From positions 4,151,607-4,215,606 of the forward strand of contig NC_000964.3 in the NCBI RefSeq assembly GCF_000009045.1: a DNA stretch of 64,000 bases, written 5' to 3'. Positions 7,230 to 41,661 of the stretch are shown piece after piece. Both the position numbers and the translations under genes were made by a program. The stretch comes from Bacillus subtilis subsp. subtilis str. 168. Its GTDB lineage: Bacteria; Bacillota; Bacilli; Bacillales; Bacillaceae. The first letter of the stretch is position 1. Each line of letters begins with the position of its first letter. The notes beneath the pieces were generated by a model. It was not told the origin of the DNA. It saw only the letters and a list, made by a program, of their open reading frames with translations, and did not search any database.

Positions 7230-7398
7230 GCTAAGCACCGTCCTCTCATTAAAAAATCTCCAACCTCCATTCTACCATTTCTACAGAAAAAAAATAGAAA
7301 AATTGTCTGTTTCCTGTTTTTTTCAGTTAGCAGATTGGATCGTTTCGGACAGTAACAAGGCGGGAAAAATGCAATAAAACATAAGGGAGGAATGAAAG

Positions 7399-7599
7399 AT
7401 GATAAAGAAATATGCGATTACACCTAATGTTGATGCGGACGGCTGGTTTATTGAGGTGGAGAATGTAGCGCCGACAGCTTTGTATACGTCTAAAGACGCC
7501 GCTATTGAAAAGGCCAAACAGGTGGCTAAGGAAAACAGTCCGTCTAAGCTTGTAATTTATGACCAGTTTAAAAATGTGGAAGAAGAACACTCATTTTAA
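7399..7599 (+). CDS. yycD: Small conserved protein (DUF2188-like)
   Basis: 66 aa; strong RBS gggaggaatg; ends in a terminator hairpin. Confidence 0.8.
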   Translation: MIKKYAITPNVDADGWFIEVENVAPTALYTSKDAAIEKAKQVAKENSPSKLVIYDQFKNVEEEHSF

Positions 7600-7646
7600 T
7601 GAATGAAAGCCTTCGCTGCAGCGAGGGTTTTTTAGCGGTTATCGGT

Positions 7647-7850
7647 TTATTTCATCCATTGGATGCCTATGTGCATCATCAAATCTGCCGCTTTTTGATA
7701 CAGATCCCACTCCCCGATCGAAGCAAATTTCCCCATCAGCTCCTGAAGCTTTAACCTCATTGCTATATATTCTTCGAAAGTGACAGCTTTTTCAGTGTCT
7801 ATTTGGTGTTCCTTCAGCATTTGTTTTAATAAGGATAACGGTGCGTGCAT
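7647..7850 (-). CDS. yyzB: Small hypothetical protein, 67 aa
   Basis: MHAPLSLLKQ start preceded by aagaggtaaggagg RBS. Confidence 0.7.
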   Translation of the reverse strand: MHAPLSLLKQMLKEHQIDTEKAVTFEEYIAMRLKLQELMGKFASIGEWDLYQKAADLMMHIGIQWMK

Positions 7851-7970
7851 AAGAACCCTCCTTACCTCTTTTATAACGGTCATTTTCCGATTGCTCTATT
7901 CCTTTGTGACATCTTCTTACATTTCACATCTGATTCTTGTACAATGGACAGAAGAGAGGAGGGATCTTTT

Positions 7971-8111
7971 GTGAGACCTTTGCAAATTTCTGCCGAAACT
8001 GCACAAAAGCTTGCAGAGTCCTTGAATCTGCCGCTTGAACAGATCATGCATATGCCTCAGCATATTCTGCTTGCCAAAATGGCTGAACTGCAAAAAGAGG
8101 ACAAATCATAG
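7971..8111 (+). CDS. yycC: YycC small protein, 46 aa
   Basis: GTG at 7971 after gaggaggg RBS; MRPLQISAETAQKLAESLNLPLEQIMHMPQH. Confidence 0.8.
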   Translation: MRPLQISAETAQKLAESLNLPLEQIMHMPQHILLAKMAELQKEDKS

Positions 8112-32857: not shown

Positions 32858-33459
32858 AATATATGTATTACGGAATAGGCATACTCATATTAAGTTTGGG
32901 CATTTCCTTAACCATACAATCAGGACTGGGCACATCACCCTTCGATGCCCTTTTGGTTGGTCTGTCAAAAAAAATCGGTCTTACCGTAGGAAGCTGGGAG
33001 GTCCTTATTTCTGTGATCCTCTTAATCTGCAACGCTATATTAACGAGAAAAAAACCTATTTTGCTGGGCTTGATTACAGCATTCATTACTGGAATAGGCA
33101 TTGACCTATGGTTGTTTGTTGTAAAAAACACCATCTATCTAAACTCGTTGTTAAGCAAACTGATTTGTTTTGGAATTGGTTTGGTGCTCATCGGTCTTGG
33201 AACAGCCATCTATCTTCAGACGAAATTCGCATCAACACCGATCGATCATTTAACACTTATTATCCGAGATCTCTCCAAAAGAACAATATTGTTTTCAAGG
33301 ACATTGGTATACGCTCTTTTCTTAGTATTAGCCATCATCTTTAAAGGCCCTATCGGCATCGGAACTCTTTTAACGGTTTGTTTGGGAGGAATGCTCCTTC
33401 ACGTTTTTATGCCTATTGTGGAAAGACATTTCTTATCAAAGAATAGAAGAGGTTATTAA
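32854..33459 (+). CDS. yyaS: YczE/YyaS/YitT-family membrane protein
   Basis: GLGTSPFDAL, GPIGIGTLL; overlaps the yyaT stop. Confidence 0.85.
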   Translation: MKYMYYGIGILILSLGISLTIQSGLGTSPFDALLVGLSKKIGLTVGSWEVLISVILLICNAILTRKKPILLGLITAFITGIGIDLWLFVVKNTIYLNSLLSKLICFGIGLVLIGLGTAIYLQTKFASTPIDHLTLIIRDLSKRTILFSRTLVYALFLVLAIIFKGPIGIGTLLTVCLGGMLLHVFMPIVERHFLSKNRRGY

Positions 33460-33553: not shown

Positions 33554-34075
33554 TTAAAATTTATAGTACCAAAAAATCGCAATTTCATTTGCTGTTGGAA
33601 AGTTGGAATAAAGCATCGTATCAACCGCACCTATTATAAAGTGATGTTTGGCATAAAAATGACAAGCTGAAATATTAATATCTTGGGTTTCAAGCATAAG
33701 ACCACAAAAATGATTCTCCTTTGCCCACTCAATCGCTTTATGTAATAATGCTGTTCCAACACCTTTTTTTCTATAGTCTTTTGCCACGGCAATGTCCTCT
33801 ATTAGTGCATACCCATTCCAGTTAGAACGGATCTTAATCCGGCCAATGCAGTTGTTTTCAAGATAATATAAAAAAGCCGCTTTCCCCTCTTCTTCAACAT
33901 AACTAACATCCATGTCATCATCTTCATATTGTTTAAAATAAGGTTTAGAAAATCGTTCCTCAGTATATGTCCAAACACCGTTTTCAAAAGCAGGTATCAT
34001 TCTCCCAAAAACAACGAAAGGTTCGTTTGGTTTATTGAAATCTTTCATATTCAAATGAGTCATTTTCATGATCAT
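33554..34075 (-). CDS. satA: Streptothricin acetyltransferase SatA (GNAT)
   Basis: 173 aa; IEDIAVAKDYRKKGVG, LMLETQDINISACHFYAK, SAT-family pattern. Confidence 0.85.
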   Translation of the reverse strand: MIMKMTHLNMKDFNKPNEPFVVFGRMIPAFENGVWTYTEERFSKPYFKQYEDDDMDVSYVEEEGKAAFLYYLENNCIGRIKIRSNWNGYALIEDIAVAKDYRKKGVGTALLHKAIEWAKENHFCGLMLETQDINISACHFYAKHHFIIGAVDTMLYSNFPTANEIAIFWYYKF

Positions 34076-34262
34076 ATCAATCTCCGCCAATCGAGATAAT
34101 ATTTAGTAAACTCGTTTCGATACTATTCAACAACAGCTTCCAAAAGTGTACTCTTTAAGAGAACAGCATTAGATAAGGCATCCATTACCTTATATATTTC
34201 ACTATCTTAATGAGGTATTTCAACAGAGGCTTGTGGTACAGTAAAAAGGAATAGAAACAAGA

Positions 34263-34375
34263 GAAAAGAAGATGAACCTATGCCCACTAACAATAAACTC
34301 AATGAGAAATATCATACTTCCTTCAACTCGCCCACAACCCTGTTGACTAGTATCCGTGGAGAGAGGAAGCTTTGA
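34263..34375 (+). pseudogene. yyaL 5'-end repeat, copy A (most degenerate)
   Basis: agaagatgaacctATGcccactaacaataaactcaat[~12-nt gap]gagaaat...cgcccacaaccctgttgactagt..ccgtggagagaggaagctttga aligns to 39578-39702. Confidence 0.85.
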
Positions 34376-34485
34376 CACAGCTTCTGCCATTGATGACATC
34401 TCTATTGAAGTATCCAAAGGACAACCAAGGATCGCTCTTTGACTTTTTCAAGAAGAAAGTAGAGTGAATAAAGGAGTGATTGAGT

Positions 34486-34842
34486 ATGTTAACAAGAGAA
34501 GATATCTTTAAACACGTCAAAGAAAAATACGGTACATCGCCTGATTACCCGTGGGAGAAATACCCAAACTATGCTTCTTTGAGACATACATCAAACAAAA
34601 AATGGTACGGTCTTATCATGAATGTTCTCCCAGAAAAATTAGGCTTGGATGGTCATGGCGAAATAGATATTCTAAATCTAAAATGTCCCCCTGAAATAAG
34701 TGATCGCTTAAGAAACGGGGAAAATATCTTACCCGGATATCATATGGATAAGGAACATTGGATTTCAATTGTTTTAGAACGGACAGATCCAGAAGGCGAA
34801 ATCTATAACTTAATCGAGCAGAGCTTTCATTTAACCAAGTGA
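34486..34842 (+). CDS. yyaQ: MmcQ/YjbR-family protein
   Basis: KKWYGLI, ILNLKCPP, ILPGYHMDKEHWIS. Confidence 0.88.
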   Translation: MLTREDIFKHVKEKYGTSPDYPWEKYPNYASLRHTSNKKWYGLIMNVLPEKLGLDGHGEIDILNLKCPPEISDRLRNGENILPGYHMDKEHWISIVLERTDPEGEIYNLIEQSFHLTK

Positions 34843-35001
34843 AGATAAAGAGTGTTCCTGCTAATCAAGCTGCGAAGAGTAGTGGGCACTTTCATTTTAG
34901 GATACTGTTCTTCACTCTGTCCACAAACGCAACTTAGTTCATCTGGTGCGAGAGTGGGAGAAGAATTTCAACCAACTTCTTATGTAAAAGGATGAATAGT
35001 T

Positions 35002-35568
35002 ATGACAAATAACTTAAAACAGAGAAGAATCATTTTAGATTTAGCAGTTACTTTAGATGGTTTTATTGAAGGGAAAAATGGAGAAGTTGATTGGTGTATT
35101 ATGGACCCTGATATGGGGTTTACTGATTTTTTAAATCAAATTGATACTATTTTATATGGTAGAAAAAGCTTCGATTTATGGGGACAATACATTCCAAAAA
35201 ATGAAGACCCTGATACAGAAAAGGAACTTTGGAAATTGGTTCATAGTAAAAAGAAATATGTTTTTTCCAGAACACAAAATGAGATTGATAATCAAGCCAT
35301 ATTTATAAATGATAATATTCTTGAAGAAGTAAATAAATTGAAGAAAAATCCTGGTAAAGACATCTGGCTATATGGTGGAGCGAGTCTCATTACAACTTTT
35401 ATAAATTTGGGGCTTGTTGATGAATTTAGATTATCTATTCACCCTGTTGTTTTGGGAGAAGGAAAACCGTTGTTTATTGATGTAAAACAGAGGATAAATT
35501 TAAAAATGGTGAATACAAGAACATTTTCCTCTGGCGTTGTGCAAATCGTTTATCATTGGAATGGCTAA
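35002..35568 (+). CDS. yyaP: Dihydrofolate reductase / RibD C-terminal family protein
   Basis: LAVTLDGFIEG, ILYGRKSF, DIWLYGGASL, HPVVLGEGKPLF. Confidence 0.9.
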   Translation: MTNNLKQRRIILDLAVTLDGFIEGKNGEVDWCIMDPDMGFTDFLNQIDTILYGRKSFDLWGQYIPKNEDPDTEKELWKLVHSKKKYVFSRTQNEIDNQAIFINDNILEEVNKLKKNPGKDIWLYGGASLITTFINLGLVDEFRLSIHPVVLGEGKPLFIDVKQRINLKMVNTRTFSSGVVQIVYHWNG

Positions 35569-35795
35569 CATTGTAAAGTAACACTCGACAGTAATCCTTC
35601 TTATTGAACTAAAGGGGAATCCATAAATAATGGGTTCCCCTTAATATACTATGGAATTATCAATATCAAATTTTCTGTAATAAAAGAGGATTGAAAAGGA
35701 CGATGTCTCCTCAATTAACATCATTAAGCATTATAGTATATTTTCTTCTCCCTCTTTTAAGTAATCGGCTAAGTTTTGTATTTATAAAAAAACGA

Positions 35796-35972
35796 AAGAA
35801 GGTGATCCAATGCCTACTAACAATAAACCCAATAGATTAATCGCTGAGAAATCTACTTATTTTACTTCAACATGCTCATAACCCTGTGGACTGGTTCCCT
35901 TGGGGAGAAGAAGCATATGAAAAAGCGAAACGCGAAAACAAGCCTGTTCTCGTATCTATTGGGTATAGCTAA
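35796..35972 (+). pseudogene. yyaL 5'-end repeat, copy B (+1 frameshift)
   Basis: aagaaggtgatcc ATG(35810) [52 protein letters not shown]. Confidence 0.93.
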
Positions 35973-36023
35973 CGATGGCTAATCTAAAGAACATGCTATT
36001 GATGCCATGTTTATTCATTTTAC

Positions 36024-36067
36024 AAAAAAGGATCAACCTTGAATTACTTTCACAAGATTGATCCTTT
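36024..36067 (-). terminator. Terminator after tet(L)
   Basis: aaaggatcaaccttg...caagattgatccttt stem. Confidence 0.75.
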
Positions 36068-36074
36068 CACTCAT

Positions 36075-37451
36075 TTAGCCATGTCTCCGCGAACGTTTAT
36101 ATACATTCAAGATTACTAGCCAACAAATAACAATGATTCCTGCAAAAAGTATGAGCATATTGCTATACAAATAGGTAGAGTGATCAACGTCAATAGGCAG
36201 CAGCCTATGATCTAGGAAGCCGATAGATAATAAACCGCCTACAATCGCAATACCCGTTCCCTCTGATAAAAAGCTCGTGAAATTAAGCAAACTCATTCCA
36301 GCGCCCGCTTCCTTTTCTTTCAAACTGCTAGACACAACTGTAGATATAACTGTTTTTGTGAAAGATAGCCCCCCAAAAACAAAAATTACTATAATTGTCA
36401 TGATCCATGGTGCTGCATCTATAAAAAAGGCAGCGATTAAAAAGCCGGAAGAAAGCAATGCACTTCCAATAGTTAGTACATACAAGGAACCTTTCCGATC
36501 AACAAGCAATCCCCCAATGTAACCAAAGATGATGACACTCATTGTTCCGGGGAAAATAATGCCGCTTCCAATTGCTGCAGTACTTAAATGGTGAACATCT
36601 TTCATCATGTAAGGAACCATAGAGACAAATCCTGCTACTGTACCAAATATTAGTCCTCCGCAAAGGGTTCCAATCACAAAAAAGACGTTTTTCCCTAATT
36701 CAGGGTCAACAAAAGGGTCCTGAGCTTTCCTAATGTGTTGCACAAATATGAAGAAAGCAAGGATACTGATGATCAGAAAAGAAAATCTATAAGATGTTGT
36801 AAACAGCATAAAAAATACGATACCTGCAGACATCAATATAATCCCTGCCATATCAATGTGTCCTCTTATTCTCTCTTCCTTTTTCAACAATTTTATAAGG
36901 AATGGAACGGTGATAATTGTTGCAGTTGGAATAAGCAGCAAATACGACCAATGGATATAATGAGCAACCATTCCGCCAATAGCTGGCCCAACACCTTCTC
37001 CCATTGCTACCAGGGACCCGATCAGGCCAAATGCTTTCCCCCTGTTCTCTTTTGGAATATAGCGCGCAACGACAACCATCACAAGAGCTGGGAATGCGGC
37101 TGCACCAATTCCTTGAATAAATCGGGCTAGAATGAGAATAGGAAAGAAAGAGTGTCCAACAAATCCAATGATCGACCCTAAGCCATTTACCATAATCCCA
37201 AATAGAAGCAGATTTTTGATGCCCAGCTGGTCTGATAGCTTTCCATATAGAGCTGTTCCAATGGAGAAGGTTAACATAAAGGCTGTATTCACCCAGTTTG
37301 CACTTGCTGGCAGTTTATTAAACTCGTTGGCAATATCAGGTAATGAGACGTTCAGAACCATTTCATTTAATACGCTGAAAAATGATAGAACACAAAGCCA
37401 AATCAAAACTTGATTGTGCCGTAAAGTTGACTGTGAATAAGACGTATTCAC
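36075..37451 (-). CDS. tetB: Tet(L) tetracycline-metal/H+ antiporter, 14-TMS MFS
   Basis: 458 aa; [35 protein letters not shown]; GTG start. Confidence 0.97.
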
Positions 37452-37484
37452 AATTTCCCCTCCATTAATGAGGGCAGACGCAGT

Positions 37485-37547
37485 TTATAGGGTCATTGAT
37501 ACGCTTCCCTCTTTTAATTGTACCCTGTTCATTTTATTGCACTTCAT
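37485..37547 (-). CDS. tetL: tet(L) leader peptide (translational attenuation), 20 aa
   Basis: MKCNKMNRVQLKEGSVSMTL* after a strong RBS, 33 nt upstream of the tetB start. Confidence 0.88.
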   Translation of the reverse strand: MKCNKMNRVQLKEGSVSMTL

Positions 37548-37785
37548 AATAACTCCCCCTACATTTGATTGATATGATCTTATTATATATAGACTAAGGA
37601 TTAAACTTTTACTTTTTTTATAAAAATTTGACCAGATTGCGAAACAAGGAAAAACGTTATTCGCATTTATCTCAAGTGGCAAAATGAAACATTAGTTTAT
37701 ATTTTCACATCACAATTATCGATAAGCAGTCAGTTATTGTATTTGTTTAGGATAACTGTGGTAACCTGAATATAACCAACTTAGG

Positions 37786-37977
37786 AAGAAGGTGATCCCA
37801 TGCCAAATAAAAGTAAACCCAATAGATTAATCGCTGAAAAGTCTCCTTATTTACTCCAACACGCCCACAACCCTGTGGACTGGTTCCCGTGGGGAGAAGA
37901 AGCATTTGCAAAAGCAAAACGCGAAAACAAGCCGGTTCTGGTCAGCATCGGTTATTCGACGACTTGTCATTGGTGGC
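37786..37977 (+). repeat. yyaL 5'-end repeat, copy C (near-identical)
   Basis: 9 substitutions plus a 3-nt gac duplication over ~172 coding nt by manual alignment; homology ends at cattggtg. Confidence 0.97.
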
Positions 37978-38039
37978 CTGGGATAATCAAATCGTGTGGA
38001 ACTCCATTAAAAGATAACAGAAGCCATTTTAAACGATAA
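37800..38039 (+). CDS. yyaO: Truncated yyaL paralogue, 79 aa (chimeric tail)
   Basis: First ~58 aa match YyaL, then an unrelated tail; has RBS and a downstream terminator. Confidence 0.7.
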
Positions 38040-38134
38040 TACTATTTGTTCAAACAATACAGTCTACCTTTTATTTCATTCATTTTCTAAAACCTGTAAT
38101 CCGTAACCACGCGGTAGCAGGTTTTTTTATTTGC

Positions 38135-38165
38135 TTGACTTAGAGTTAACTCTAAATTGTAAACT
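38135..38165 (+). promoter_or_regulatory. MerR-type promoter/operator of yyaN-yyaM
   Basis: TTGACT-19 nt-TAAACT with perfect dyad ttagagttaactctaa (38140-38155) in the spacer. Confidence 0.88.
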
Positions 38166-38189
38166 AACTTTAATTAAATGAGAGGGATG

Positions 38190-38606
38190 ATGTTGTTGTA
38201 TTCCATTAGTAAAGCTGCTGAGAAGACTAGTATTAGTTCGTATACATTAAGATATTACGAAAAGATTGGGTTACTTCCACCACCAAAACGAAAAAACAGT
38301 GGAAGGCGTTTTTATACGGAGACTGATATTCAGTTCATGTTATTCCTGAAAAGTTTAAAGGAAACAGGTATGTCTTTGGAGGATATTAATGAGTTTGTCA
38401 AAGACGGATGCATTTTGGAAAAAATCAATTCGGATGTTAAATCGGCACAACTCTCCCCATCTATAAATAAACGTATTGAGATTTTAACCAAGCACTTAGA
38501 GAAAATGGAAATTAAAAAAAGGGAGCTGGAAGAAGTGATTTCTACTACAAAAGGAAAACTGGATACATATTATTCAATTTTGAAAGAGGAAGTGGAAAAC
38601 AAATGA
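38190..38606 (+). CDS. yyaN: MerR-family regulator
   Basis: YSISKAAEKTSISSYTLRYYEKIGLL, RFYTETDI. Confidence 0.92.
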   Translation: MLLYSISKAAEKTSISSYTLRYYEKIGLLPPPKRKNSGRRFYTETDIQFMLFLKSLKETGMSLEDINEFVKDGCILEKINSDVKSAQLSPSINKRIEILTKHLEKMEIKKRELEEVISTTKGKLDTYYSILKEEVENK

Positions 38607-39520
38607 AACATTTAAATATATACATAATGTTACTTGGCTTCTCTATTTTCACGGGAGCTACTTTTAATCTTGCAAAATATACAGTTGGATATTTTTCTCC
38701 ATCGTCTTCTGCGGCATGGCGTTTCGGTTTAGCGGCTGCAGTGATGCTCATCATTTTGATTTTTACTGAAGGTATAAAGAAGAGTCAATTACGGAAAAAC
38801 GCCGTTTCATACATTGTTCTTGGAATTATAGGAATCTTTGGATTTAATGCCTTGTTTTTTGTTGGTTTAAAATATACATCTCCCGTTAACGGAGCATTAA
38901 TAATGGGGCTGAATCCTTTATTAACAGCAATTCTCGCTCGAATTATCTTAAAGGACAACATGACAAAAAAACAAGTACTCGGCATATTCTTTGCATTCAT
39001 CGGTGTATTGTTAGTCATTACACAAGGTTCTATCGAAACCATTAAAACCTTATCAATTTCAGGAGGAGACTTAATAATCTTTACAGGTAACGTTTGTTGG
39101 GCACTTTATGGCGTACTTGGACGTCGGTTTGTAAAGGATGGTACACCGCTATCTACAACCACTTATACGATGGTTATTGGTGCTGTTAGTTTAATAGTAG
39201 TTTCCTTATTTACATCCAAACCTGTTTCTTTATCGAACATCCCGATTGGAGTTTGGGGGGCAATTGCTTTTATGGCTTTTTTTACAAGTGTTTTGGGTTA
39301 CCTATGGTGGAATCAGGGGATTAAAGAGATTGGAGCTAGTAAAACATCTTTATTTTTCAACCTTGTTCCCGTTGTAACGATGATTATTTCATTTGCCGTT
39401 GGAACACCAATAAAGGTATTTCAAGTTATTGGGGCTGTGCTAGTTATATTAGGCGTTTTAACCGCTTCGGGGGTAATACGTATTCCTAAGTACAATACTA
39501 AAGAACAGTCAGCTATATAA
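38603..39520 (+). CDS. yyaM: EamA/DMT-family exporter
   Basis: 305 aa, 10 TM, two EamA repeats; ATGA overlap with yyaN. Confidence 0.9.
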   Translation: MKHLNIYIMLLGFSIFTGATFNLAKYTVGYFSPSSSAAWRFGLAAAVMLIILIFTEGIKKSQLRKNAVSYIVLGIIGIFGFNALFFVGLKYTSPVNGALIMGLNPLLTAILARIILKDNMTKKQVLGIFFAFIGVLLVITQGSIETIKTLSISGGDLIIFTGNVCWALYGVLGRRFVKDGTPLSTTTYTMVIGAVSLIVVSLFTSKPVSLSNIPIGVWGAIAFMAFFTSVLGYLWWNQGIKEIGASKTSLFFNLVPVVTMIISFAVGTPIKVFQVIGAVLVILGVLTASGVIRIPKYNTKEQSAI

Positions 39521-39591
39521 AGAAATAGGGAGTATTTTTGAGAAAATGTGTTAAGTTAAATATACACTAATTATAGGAAGAAGGTGATCCC

Positions 39592-41661
39592 ATGCCAAAC
39601 AAAAGTAAACCCAATAGATTAATCAATGAGAAATCACCATATTTACTCCAACACGCCCACAACCCTGTGGACTGGTTCCCGTGGGGAGAAGAAGCTTTTG
39701 AAAAAGCAAAACGCGAAAACAAGCCGGTTCTGGTCAGCATCGGTTATTCGACTTGTCATTGGTGCCACGTGATGGCCCACGAAAGCTTTGAAGACGAAGA
39801 AATCGCGCGTCTTCTCAATGAACGGTTTGTGGCGATTAAAGTCGACCGGGAAGAGCGGCCTGATGTGGATTCTGTTTATATGAGAATCTGCCAGCTGATG
39901 ACCGGGCAGGGCGGCTGGCCGCTGAATGTGTTTATCACGCCTGATCAAAAGCCGTTTTACGCGGGTACATATTTTCCAAAGACGAGCAAATTCAATCGTC
40001 CCGGTTTTGTTGATGTGCTTGAGCATCTGTCTGAGACGTTTGCGAACGACCGCGAGCATGTCGAGGATATTGCGGAGAACGCCGCTAAACATTTGCAGAC
40101 CAAAACAGCTGCAAAAACTGGTGAGGGCCTTAGCGAATCAGCGATTCACCGGACATTCCAGCAGCTTGCCAGCGGGTTTGACACGATCTACGGCGGTTTC
40201 GGGCAGGCACCGAAATTTCCAATGCCTCATATGCTGATGTATTTGCTACGTTATGATCACAATACAGGGCAGGAGAACGCTCTATACAACGTGACGAAAA
40301 CATTGGACAGCATGGCGAATGGCGGCATTTACGATCATATCGGCTATGGGTTCGCCCGCTATTCGACCGATGACGAGTGGCTCGTTCCCCACTTTGAAAA
40401 AATGCTGTACGACAATGCGCTGCTGCTGACCGCTTATACAGAAGCCTATCAGGTCACGCAAAACAGCCGCTATAAAGAGATTTGTGAGCAGATCATTACG
40501 TTCATTCAGAGGGAAATGACTCATGAAGACGGAAGCTTTTTCTCGGCTTTGGACGCGGACACAGAAGGAGAAGAAGGAAAGTACTACGTGTGGTCAAAGG
40601 AAGAGATTCTAAAAACGCTCGGGGACGATCTCGGAACGCTGTATTGCCAAGTGTATGACATCACTGAAGAAGGAAACTTTGAAGGCAAAAATATTCCTAA
40701 CCTCATTCACACAAAGCGAGAACAAATCAAAGAGGATGCCGGGTTAACCGAAAAAGAGCTCAGTCTCAAACTCGAAGACGCAAGACAGCAGCTCTTGAAG
40801 ACACGCGAGGAAAGAACCTATCCGCATGTCGATGATAAAGTGCTTACCTCATGGAACGCGCTGATGATCGCGGGTCTTGCGAAAGCGGCAAAGGTATACC
40901 AGGAGCCGAAATATCTCAGCCTAGCGAAAGACGCCATCACATTTATTGAAAACAAATTAATCATCGACGGCCGTGTGATGGTCCGATATCGTGATGGCGA
41001 AGTGAAAAACAAAGGCTTTATCGACGATTACGCTTTTCTCCTATGGGCTTATCTGGATCTCTATGAAGCTTCGTTTGATCTTTCTTATTTACAAAAAGCG
41101 AAGAAACTGACAGACGATATGATCAGCTTATTTTGGGATGAGGAGCATGGCGGATTCTACTTCACCGGACACGATGCAGAAGCCTTAATCGTACGGGAAA
41201 AAGAAGTGTACGACGGCGCCGTGCCTTCAGGAAACAGTGTGGCAGCTGTTCAGCTGCTGCGTCTCGGGCAAGTCACAGGCGACTTATCACTGATCGAAAA
41301 AGCGGAAACAATGTTTTCCGTGTTCAAGCCAGACATAGAAGCGTATCCGAGCGGCCATGCTTTCTTTATGCAAAGTGTGTTAAGGCATCTGATGCCTAAA
41401 AAAGAAATCGTGATTTTTGGCAGCGCAGACGATCCAGCCAGAAAACAAATTATAGCGGAGCTTCAAAAAGCCTTTAAGCCCAACGACTCCATTCTGGTGG
41501 CAGAGCAGCCCGAGCAATGCAAAGACATTGCGCCATTTGCAGCAGACTACCGCATCATAGACGGCAAAACAACCGTTTATATTTGTGAAAACTTCGCCTG
41601 CCAGCAACCGACAACAAATATTGAAGAAGCGATCCACACATTAATAAGCAGCAGGGATTAA
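39592..41661 (+). CDS. yyaL: Thioredoxin-like (DUF255) plus six-hairpin glycosidase-like protein (SPATA20/SSP411 family)
   Basis: 689 aa; [36 protein letters not shown]. Confidence 0.92.

Follow-up and report, generated by a model that had tools for sequence, protein, structure and literature searches.

The stretch of DNA analysed here (64,000 nt from the chromosome of Bacillus subtilis subsp. subtilis str. 168; "the window" below) contains yyaL, whose coding sequence (CDS, 39592-41661) is intact and encodes a 689-residue protein of the Pfam family Thioredox_DsbH. Upstream of yyaL lies a tandem array of small accessory genes, and between these genes the beginning of yyaL itself recurs, as a unit that comprises the promoter, the ribosome-binding site (RBS) and the 5' end of the CDS. 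From left to right the array reads unit A, yyaQ, yyaP, unit B, tet(L), unit C, yyaN-yyaM and unit D, which is the start of the intact gene. The cassettes are thus bounded by the four units and by one additional junction, between yyaQ and yyaP, that consists of a short core sequence only. The features, in coordinates of the window, are as follows.

33554-34090, minus strand: satA/yyaR-like GNAT acetyltransferase (open reading frame, ORF; Pfam Acetyltransf_1 at the identical locus L081)
34266-34396, plus strand: unit A, decayed yyaL RBS and 5' CDS (nhmmer E 2.4e-19; gapped)
34397-34950, plus strand: yyaQ cassette (YjbR family; gene 34486-34842; left end TCTATTGAAGTATCCAAAGGACAACC)
34932-34950: core-only degenerate junction ACTTAGTTCATCTGGTGCG, right end of the yyaQ cassette
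34951-35795, plus strand: yyaP cassette (RibD_C family by Pfam; gene 35002-35568)
35796-36008, plus strand: unit B, a type-2 unit (nhmmer E 1.9e-60; profile span 35797-36011)
36009-37785, minus strand: tet(L) cassette (tetB(L) 36075-37451; leader peptide 37485-37547)
37786-37977, plus strand: unit C, corresponding to yyaO (79-residue ORF 37800-38039, Pfam Thioredox_DsbH; nhmmer E 5.4e-60)
37978-39577, plus strand: cassette of yyaN (MerR, about 38190-38606) and yyaM (EamA, 38603-39520), plus the promoter region of unit D (ORFs, Pfam)
39578-39766, plus strand: unit D, the present 5' end of intact yyaL, free of stops (nhmmer E about 1e-60)
39747-39767, plus strand: putative attB-like core TTCGACTTGTCAT-TG-GTGCCA (codons S-T-C-H-W-C)

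Exactly four copies of the yyaL start are present in the 64 kb, all on the plus strand, and repeat finding, pairwise local alignment and a profile (nhmmer) scan of the whole window agree on this number. The profile was built from 13 units of seven genomes, and the E-values, from 2.4e-19 for A to about 1e-60 for B, C and D, exclude chance as the origin of the copies. Units C and D are 89.5% identical over 239 nt, which include about 50 nt upstream, and 95% identical over 179 ungapped nt. By local alignment, B is 86% identical to D and 88% to C (158 nt, one indel), and A aligns with the other three at 71-75% identity, with gaps. A preliminary description of this DNA had reported the four copies, and its coordinates and gene content are right apart from small changes at the ends of the copies. 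It had counted 29 substitutions in 159 nt between B and D, where the alignment gives 22 of 158 columns, and it had ended B at about 35953, whereas B in fact continues to about 36008. The window corresponds to the yyaL region near the replication origin in 168-type B. subtilis chromosomes, and identical YyaL proteins are found on 24 contigs, with one neighbourhood common to all of them.

The units differ in their state of preservation. Copy A had been described as gapped and truncated; it is gapped, with internal deletions of approximately 14 and 45 nt, but it too reaches the CHW codons, in a degenerate core, and its junction (..TGCCATTGATGACATC followed by TCTATTGAAG) lies at about 34396. Copy B consists of 53 codons ending in ..IGYS, a TAA stop codon (35971-35973), an 18-nt spacer and a degenerate TCHWCH stretch, and its right junction is at approximately 36008 (..GATGCCATG followed by TTTATTC); it carries one frameshifting indel and in-frame stops. 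Unit C is unbroken up to CHW, where the break falls between ..TGTCATTGGTG and GCCTGGGATAATC. Immediately to the left of the core, copy C has a 3-nt duplication (GAC; TTCGACGACTTGTC) at 37957-37962; neither D nor the orthologues of copy C at two other loci (L100 and L102) have it. The TGTGGTA-type, -10-like motif reported upstream of A, C and D is indeed there, and is also seen upstream of most units of other genomes. A generic sigma-70 scan was uninformative, with 28 sites against 21.7 expected and therefore no enrichment.

All of these units end at the same place in yyaL. The core, TGTCAT-TG-GTGCCA, encodes the thioredoxin-type CxxC motif (yyaL codons 55-59), and from the sequences the crossover would lie at or near the TG at 39760-39761. 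We aligned 17 junctions from Bacillus, Paenibacillus, Exiguobacterium and Desulfosporosinus on the His-Trp codons; in 17 of 17 the yyaL similarity ends 0-10 nt past the same TG, and the repeated unit measures 190-300 nt. More than 12 independent junctions, with different cassettes and in different genera, fall within about 12 nt of this one core. Some junctions consist of bare cores of 11-20 nt with no long homology, as at the right end of yyaQ, around an ars cassette of B. subtilis (L105), and around a 1.7-kb cassette, X, of another B. subtilis locus (L102).

The preliminary description had placed one accessory unit in each interval; this holds for the other intervals, but A-B contains two cassettes, separated by the core at 34932-34950. 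The yyaQ cassette is 84% identical over 591 nt to positions 7516-8101 of a licheniformis-group locus (L084), and the homology begins precisely at the junction and stops directly past the degenerate core in both genomes, in agreement with the expectation that cassette boundaries elsewhere coincide with the copies. The array of L084 lacks yyaP, and the two sequences diverge past the core. Cassettes are bounded by units or cores likewise in L082, L084, L087, L102 and L105. L102 is co-linear with the window except that cassette X (DUF4944 and Amidase_6) is present exactly at the copy-C junction, bounded by the core repeats TGTCATTGGTG and TGTTGTTGGTA; the left end of the yyaN-yyaM cassette, GCCTGGGATAATCAA, is kept there, following the degenerate core TGTTGTTGGTA. 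Three unrelated cassettes share a left-end motif of about 20 nt, CTnTTARARTAACCAAWA, positioned immediately past the core.

The tet(L) cassette is essentially a bare plasmid-type tet(L) module plus its leader. Pfam identifies MFS_1 and Tet_res_leader at co-linear loci (L100/L101), and plasmid tet(L) determinants (about 80% identity; pBC16-type and many Enterococcus and Staphylococcus plasmids) match only 36024-37605, so that the homology begins 16 nt inside the left junction and stops about 180 nt before unit C. In the plasmid search only this determinant was matched, and the yyaL-start unit is not on known plasmids, which leaves an origin of the cassette from a plasmid by Campbell-type integration unsupported. 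A pattern scan of viral contigs and a blastn search of a phage collection gave no match to the unit. The cassette (36009-37785) is 98.7% identical to its counterpart in L100 (8210-9986), while the adjoining cassettes are only 90-93% identical, which suggests from sequence comparison that tet(L) was exchanged or converted more recently than its neighbours.

Arrays of the same architecture and different content are widespread. There is a recurrent class of YyaL homologs of 626-629 residues that lack the first 60 residues or so, and at their loci yyaL is preceded by several small Thioredox_DsbH ORFs that are separated by unrelated genes. In B. tequilensis (L082) the units lie at 945, 5950 and 9787, and the cassettes encode, among others, a VTT-domain protein, a two-component system and a methyltransferase; in L084 the units lie at 7336, 8562 and 9787, and one cassette holds a YjbR gene, another a LysE gene; and a Paenibacillus locus (L087) has at least five copies. 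With one 53-residue fragment as the query, 1002 clusters of fragment ORFs of 52-92 residues were retrieved, from the subtilis, licheniformis and pumilus groups and from Paenibacillus, Exiguobacterium, Lentibacillus, Sporolactobacillus and Desulfosporosinus. The cassette content upstream of yyaL is highly variable between strains and species, as the preliminary description had anticipated. Within B. subtilis, strain 168, L101, L103 and L100 all have A-B-C, and they differ exclusively to the right of C, which makes it plausible that the array grows at its yyaL-proximal end. The strain-variable zone starts near 33437, to the left of copy A, and includes satA; B. subtilis L105 matches the window at 96.9% up to 33437 and then has other content.

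Horizontal replacement has also affected the resident gene, in its 5' segment. In sliding comparisons, the identity of L082 to L084 is 88-98% between the RBS and about +230 and then 60-85% in the gene body, whereas for L082 and the window the relation is reversed, with 75-85% identity in the 5' segment and 88-98% downstream. This mosaic structure implies that each insertion brings a foreign gene start, and it agrees with the earlier proposal that each insertion regenerated the yyaL start and displaced the older one. The displaced copies also have separate histories. Among resident units, B is nearest to those of B. tequilensis (91%) and L084 (89%), with D at 84%, and A is nearest to a displaced fragment of B. 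tequilensis (85%), with D at 80%. Because A and B are nearer to units of other species, the gradient of similarity along the array partly reflects differences of lineage, and the proposal that decay with distance from yyaL serves as a clock is confounded.

At other yyaL loci the same junction is occupied by elements that encode recombinases. Two B. subtilis loci (L100/L106) have the satA-yyaQ-yyaP-tet(L)-C array of the window (90-99% identity), and 56 nt past C they have a gene (L100 10257-11765) for a 503-residue large serine recombinase (Resolvase, Recombinase and Zn_ribbon_recom domains; taken from the Pfam record of the L100 protein), followed by CwlT-, ConG-, YddF-, ConE- and ConD/ConB-like genes. 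An integrative and conjugative element (ICE) with a large serine recombinase is also present in L104, L105, L107 and L108. The identical recombinase adjoins a yyaL fragment, with one and the same left attachment site (attL; ..CATTGGTRC followed by CAAGTTCGTATAGCTACACA), in three left-flank contexts, which include an ars-cassette array in another B. subtilis and GntR-EamA in the velezensis group. In L100, L104 and L105 this attL breaks 2-4 nt past the TG of the core. The nearest solved structure to the recombinase is the SPbeta integrase YokA (E 1.8e-27); assignment to Ccr was rejected, as the NCBIfam CcrB model scores 91 bits against a cutoff of 900.

The other end of such an element is seen in B. 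amyloliquefaciens (L083), where a MobT-type relaxase, ConQ, ImmR, ImmA and cargo genes precede a surrogate unit that is fused to yyaL. A 92-residue gene (84% amino acid identity) is common to the right edge of L104 and the left edge of L083, and the composite of the two loci is an ICEBs1-like element of about 21 kb, with attL, recombinase, conjugation genes, MobT relaxase, ImmR/ImmA, cargo, surrogate unit and the right attachment site (attR), in this order. The cargo adjoining the surrogate unit (L083 7266-9749) consists of an AAA_21-type ATPase and a DUF4435 protein, a pair reminiscent of anti-phage defence systems, with weak similarity to PtuA by NCBIfam. In Exiguobacterium (L090-L092) a different element lies between the displaced fragment and the resident gene; it encodes a tyrosine recombinase as well as a 512-residue large serine recombinase (domains of the L090 protein by hmmscan) that has 32% identity to its Bacillus counterpart.

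The attP site of the Bacillus element was reconstructed from different genomes, with its left half taken from attR (L082/L084) and its right half from attL (L100). The predicted site, GTAGCTATACG-CACATGTCAT-TG-GTACCAAGTT-CGTATAGCTAC, is 44 bp long and has a perfect 11-bp terminal inverted repeat (GTAGCTATACG and CGTATAGCTAC) centred on CAT-TG-G, a form that would be expected of a serine-integrase attP, in which imperfect inverted arms flank a central crossover dinucleotide within some 40-50 bp. The Exiguobacterium element has a 12-bp arm with one mismatch and the same centre.

A decayed form of the Bacillus element is present in B. velezensis (L109). Its left flank is that of L104 (94.6% identity) and its ImmR/ImmA genes are 91.5% identical to those of the ICE; no recombinase and no transfer genes are found in L109, and an intact yyaL follows behind a stop-free unit. 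On sequence grounds, L109 appears to be the intermediate predicted by the accretion model described below. At 5667-5718 of L109 the displaced fragment is cut to an inverted 51-nt piece, 100% identical to the L104 fragment, which we read as a probable rearrangement scar at the left end of the decayed ICE.

We consider it likely that the array upstream of yyaL arose by tandem accretion, through site-specific recombination at one short core site within yyaL. Integrative elements would target the core, and at least one family of them would be the ICEBs1-like conjugative element of about 21 kb with its large serine recombinase, which would catalyse the events. The far end of such an element would carry a surrogate yyaL promoter, RBS and the first 57 codons or so. 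With the surrogate start at the far end, integration would push the old start leftward, where decay follows, and the element's own start would be fused to the gene body; the site would thereby be re-created beside the gene body and be usable by the next element. Older elements would lose their recombinase and transfer genes, or might never have had them, and what survives would be their cargo, as one- or two-gene cassettes that have gene-start copies or bare cores of 11-20 nt at their ends. On this model the four or five cassettes of strain 168 would have arrived in the same way, their order would be chronological with copy A the oldest unit, and they would derive from decayed elements.

Several results weigh against this reading for the window itself. 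The interval contains no recombinase among its called genes (Pfam), and tblastn with two large serine recombinases found no match anywhere in the 64 kb, as the preliminary description had stated for integrases; nor were ICE-derived remnants found in the window's own cassettes. The ICE of about 21 kb is a composite of loci from two species, both ends not having been seen in one genome. Cassette X of L102 sits at an internal junction, so that either strict polarity fails or strain 168 has lost X. The putative att arms of tet(L) and yyaN-yyaM are symmetric at 10 of 30 and 7 of 30 positions, against a shuffled background of 7.6 +/- 2.4, and because these arms have no symmetry the recombinase origin of the two cassettes is argued by analogy. 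The symmetry count is crude and unspecific, with one mismatched control reaching 16 of 30, so that only contiguous blocks carry weight. A mirrored GGTTATTC/GAATAACC geometry, considered for the small cassettes, was unsupported by this test at the junctions of the window.

The alternatives differ from accretion in what moves and how. The preliminary description favoured integration by single crossover, in which RecA would integrate circular DNAs with a 5' piece of yyaL by Campbell-type crossover and a site-specific recombinase would play no part. In its favour are the natural competence of B. subtilis, the lack of a recombinase in the window, and the 190-300 nt over which the units are 72-95% identical, enough for homologous recombination. 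However, single crossovers do not predict right ends that coincide within about 12 nt over many unrelated cassettes and genera; moreover, several cassettes are bounded by 11-20-nt cores alone, and a recombinase-bearing ICE with a symmetric predicted attP occupies the same junction, and we regard this explanation as quite improbable. Still less credible, to the point that we give it hardly any weight, is the idea that the yyaL start went through local segmental duplications and that unrelated genes were later inserted between the resulting copies. It would account for direct repeats in one orientation throughout, but A and B are nearer to the units of other species than to D, the 5' segment is exchanged horizontally, and the same architecture recurs with different cargo in distant genera.

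A further alternative retains site-specific recombination but holds that the small cassettes (yyaQ, yyaP, tet(L), yyaN-yyaM and X) are not decayed ICEs but non-autonomous units, moved singly in trans by the serine recombinases of co-resident elements, which would make the array a functional integron analogue. These cassettes have one or two genes each and no ICE pseudogene debris; yyaQ is core-ended on both sides in two species at 84% identity, which is above that of the surrounding gene bodies; X is present or absent among B. subtilis strains with core repeats on both sides; three unrelated cassettes share the left-end motif; and fragment ORFs form as many as 1002 clusters. On the other hand, L109 shows that elements decay at the yyaL site, the junctions of tet(L) and yyaN-yyaM have no recognisable symmetric arms, and the shared left-end motif is paired with no recombinase. 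On balance we think this alternative unlikely.

A broader version of this idea concerns the Firmicutes as a whole, and we put it forward as a tentative and somewhat doubtful proposal. The yyaL core would be a docking site at which small recombinase-less cassettes (yyaQ, yyaP, tet(L), yyaN-yyaM, X and ars), each with a short att arm and often with a surrogate start, are captured, excised and exchanged in trans by the large serine recombinases of passing ICEs, and the conserved stop at codon 53 may be a selected device. In function, such a trans-exchange system would parallel an integron, with a serine recombinase and a gene start as its basis.

The stop in question characterizes the type-2 units. 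It lies exactly after codon 53 (..SIGYS) and is TAG, except in copy B, where it is TAA; it is found in the window (35971-35973), L082 (9970), L084 (9970), L087 (8460 and 10160), L090 (10160) and L093 (7195). The 12-20 nt past the stop differ completely between elements and genera, and the stop splits a resident yyaL into parts of 53 and approximately 630 residues. In three of five cases a second copy of the Ser codon directly precedes the Thr codon, a pattern like that of the take-off and landing codons of translational bypass. The Exiguobacterium insert keeps the reading frame, and the ORF downstream of it begins with MSTCHWC. The stop-bearing insert of about 20 nt was considered as a bypass gap or as the footprint of a tiny transposon, but the att reconstruction explains it better: given the reconstructed attP, the insert that splits yyaL is the element-side attP arm, lying between the surrogate codons and the core. 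This accounts for the insert but not for the conservation of the stop codon, which may gate the integrity of yyaL or signal bypass or re-initiation, rather than represent damage.

Accretion of this kind is known from other gene ends. A three-step model for ICEs, integrative and mobilizable elements (IMEs) and cis-mobilizable elements (CIMEs) comprises integration, decay to an att-flanked remnant, and a new integration at the att site of the gene end (PMC5704250). An example is the accretion of ICESt1- and ICESt3-related elements in Streptococcus thermophilus, where the fda 3' end is the target (Pavlovic 2004 and Bellanger 2011, cited through PMC5704250). The fda-type arrays and the yyaL array have in common site-specific integration at a gene end, a replacement gene end and a regenerated att site, as well as older elements that still have att repeats on their flanks but no longer the genes for recombination and transfer, and an order that results from insertion of new elements at the att site beside the gene. 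They differ in that the target in yyaL is the 5' end, so that the element supplies a promoter, an RBS and about 57 codons (a unit of 190-300 nt); in that the recombinases at yyaL are large serine rather than tyrosine enzymes; in that many cassettes are only 0.5-2 kb long; and in that many surrogate units at yyaL hold a stop and an att arm, so that the gene is left split.

Composite islands of the staphylococcal cassette chromosome (SCC/SCCmec) form at the 3' end of staphylococcal rlmH (orfX) by means of large serine recombinases, and their tandem arrays include recombinase-less pseudo-elements with resistance genes, bounded by short direct repeats. The yyaL array resembles SCC in its large serine recombinases, in the use of the end of a conserved housekeeping-type gene as attB, and in its tandem arrangement, but the recombinase at yyaL is not a Ccr, the 5' rather than the 3' end is used, and the vehicle is an ICEBs1-type conjugative element. 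With ICEBs1 itself the yyaL-site ICE shares ImmR/ImmA, the MobT-type relaxase (NicK), ConQ, ConB/ConD/ConE/ConG, CwlT and the gene order; it differs in having a large serine recombinase at the opposite end instead of a tyrosine integrase beside immA, and in targeting yyaL rather than trnS-leu2.

The likeness to integrons and to clustered regularly interspaced short palindromic repeats (CRISPR) that the preliminary description had drawn does not hold in mechanism. Like mobile integrons, the yyaL array is an ordered series of short accessory or resistance cassettes, promoter-proximal, at one site, with the newest presumably by the anchor. Unlike integrons, it has no IntI, the recombinases found at the site elsewhere are of the serine type, the cassettes have their own promoters and occur in both orientations, and their ends are gene-start copies or an 11-20-nt core rather than attC hairpins; folding of the units and of the core-only junction is no stronger than that of shuffled sequences (z from -1.19 to +0.46). 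CRISPR repeats are near-identical and about 23-55 nt long, whereas the yyaL repeats are 130-215 nt long and 72-95% identical, the "spacers" are gene cassettes of 0.5-1.8 kb, and the interval has no cas genes.

In the searchable literature there was no relevant account of yyaL or DUF255 as an integration site. As far as that literature shows, the process (accretion of ICEs, IMEs and CIMEs) is known, and what is new is the site at the 5' end of yyaL with its CxxC core, the breadth of its use among Firmicutes, and the full surrogate of promoter and 5' CDS. Accretion would explain an oddity of the 168 genome, the yyaO fragment, and the clustering of chromosomal tet(L), yyaQ/P, yyaN/M and satA would be the sediment of repeated integration. 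It would also define a widespread Firmicutes integration hotspot with a core of about 17 bp and a candidate pair of recombinase and attP. "Intrinsic" chromosomal resistance and detoxification genes near yyaL would lie in att-bounded cassettes, which co-resident ICEs may re-mobilise, and many of the annotated "YyaL" proteins of 626-642 residues and "DUF255" ORFs of 53-92 residues would be products of integration rather than genes in their own right.

In some B. subtilis strains (L094-L099, e.g., CP095736.1 at about 2.67 Mb) yyaL 5' units are found away from yyaL, at 398-593 and 9988-10180 of L094. They carry the ICE att arms GTAGCTATACG and CGTATAGCTAC and lie within a skin-like region that has arsR, yqcK, rapE, LXG toxin genes and a spoIVCA-like recombinase, next to a ketoacyl-synthase gene that B. 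tequilensis has in its yyaL array. Judging from this arrangement, part of a yyaL array seems to have moved onto another mobile element in these strains.

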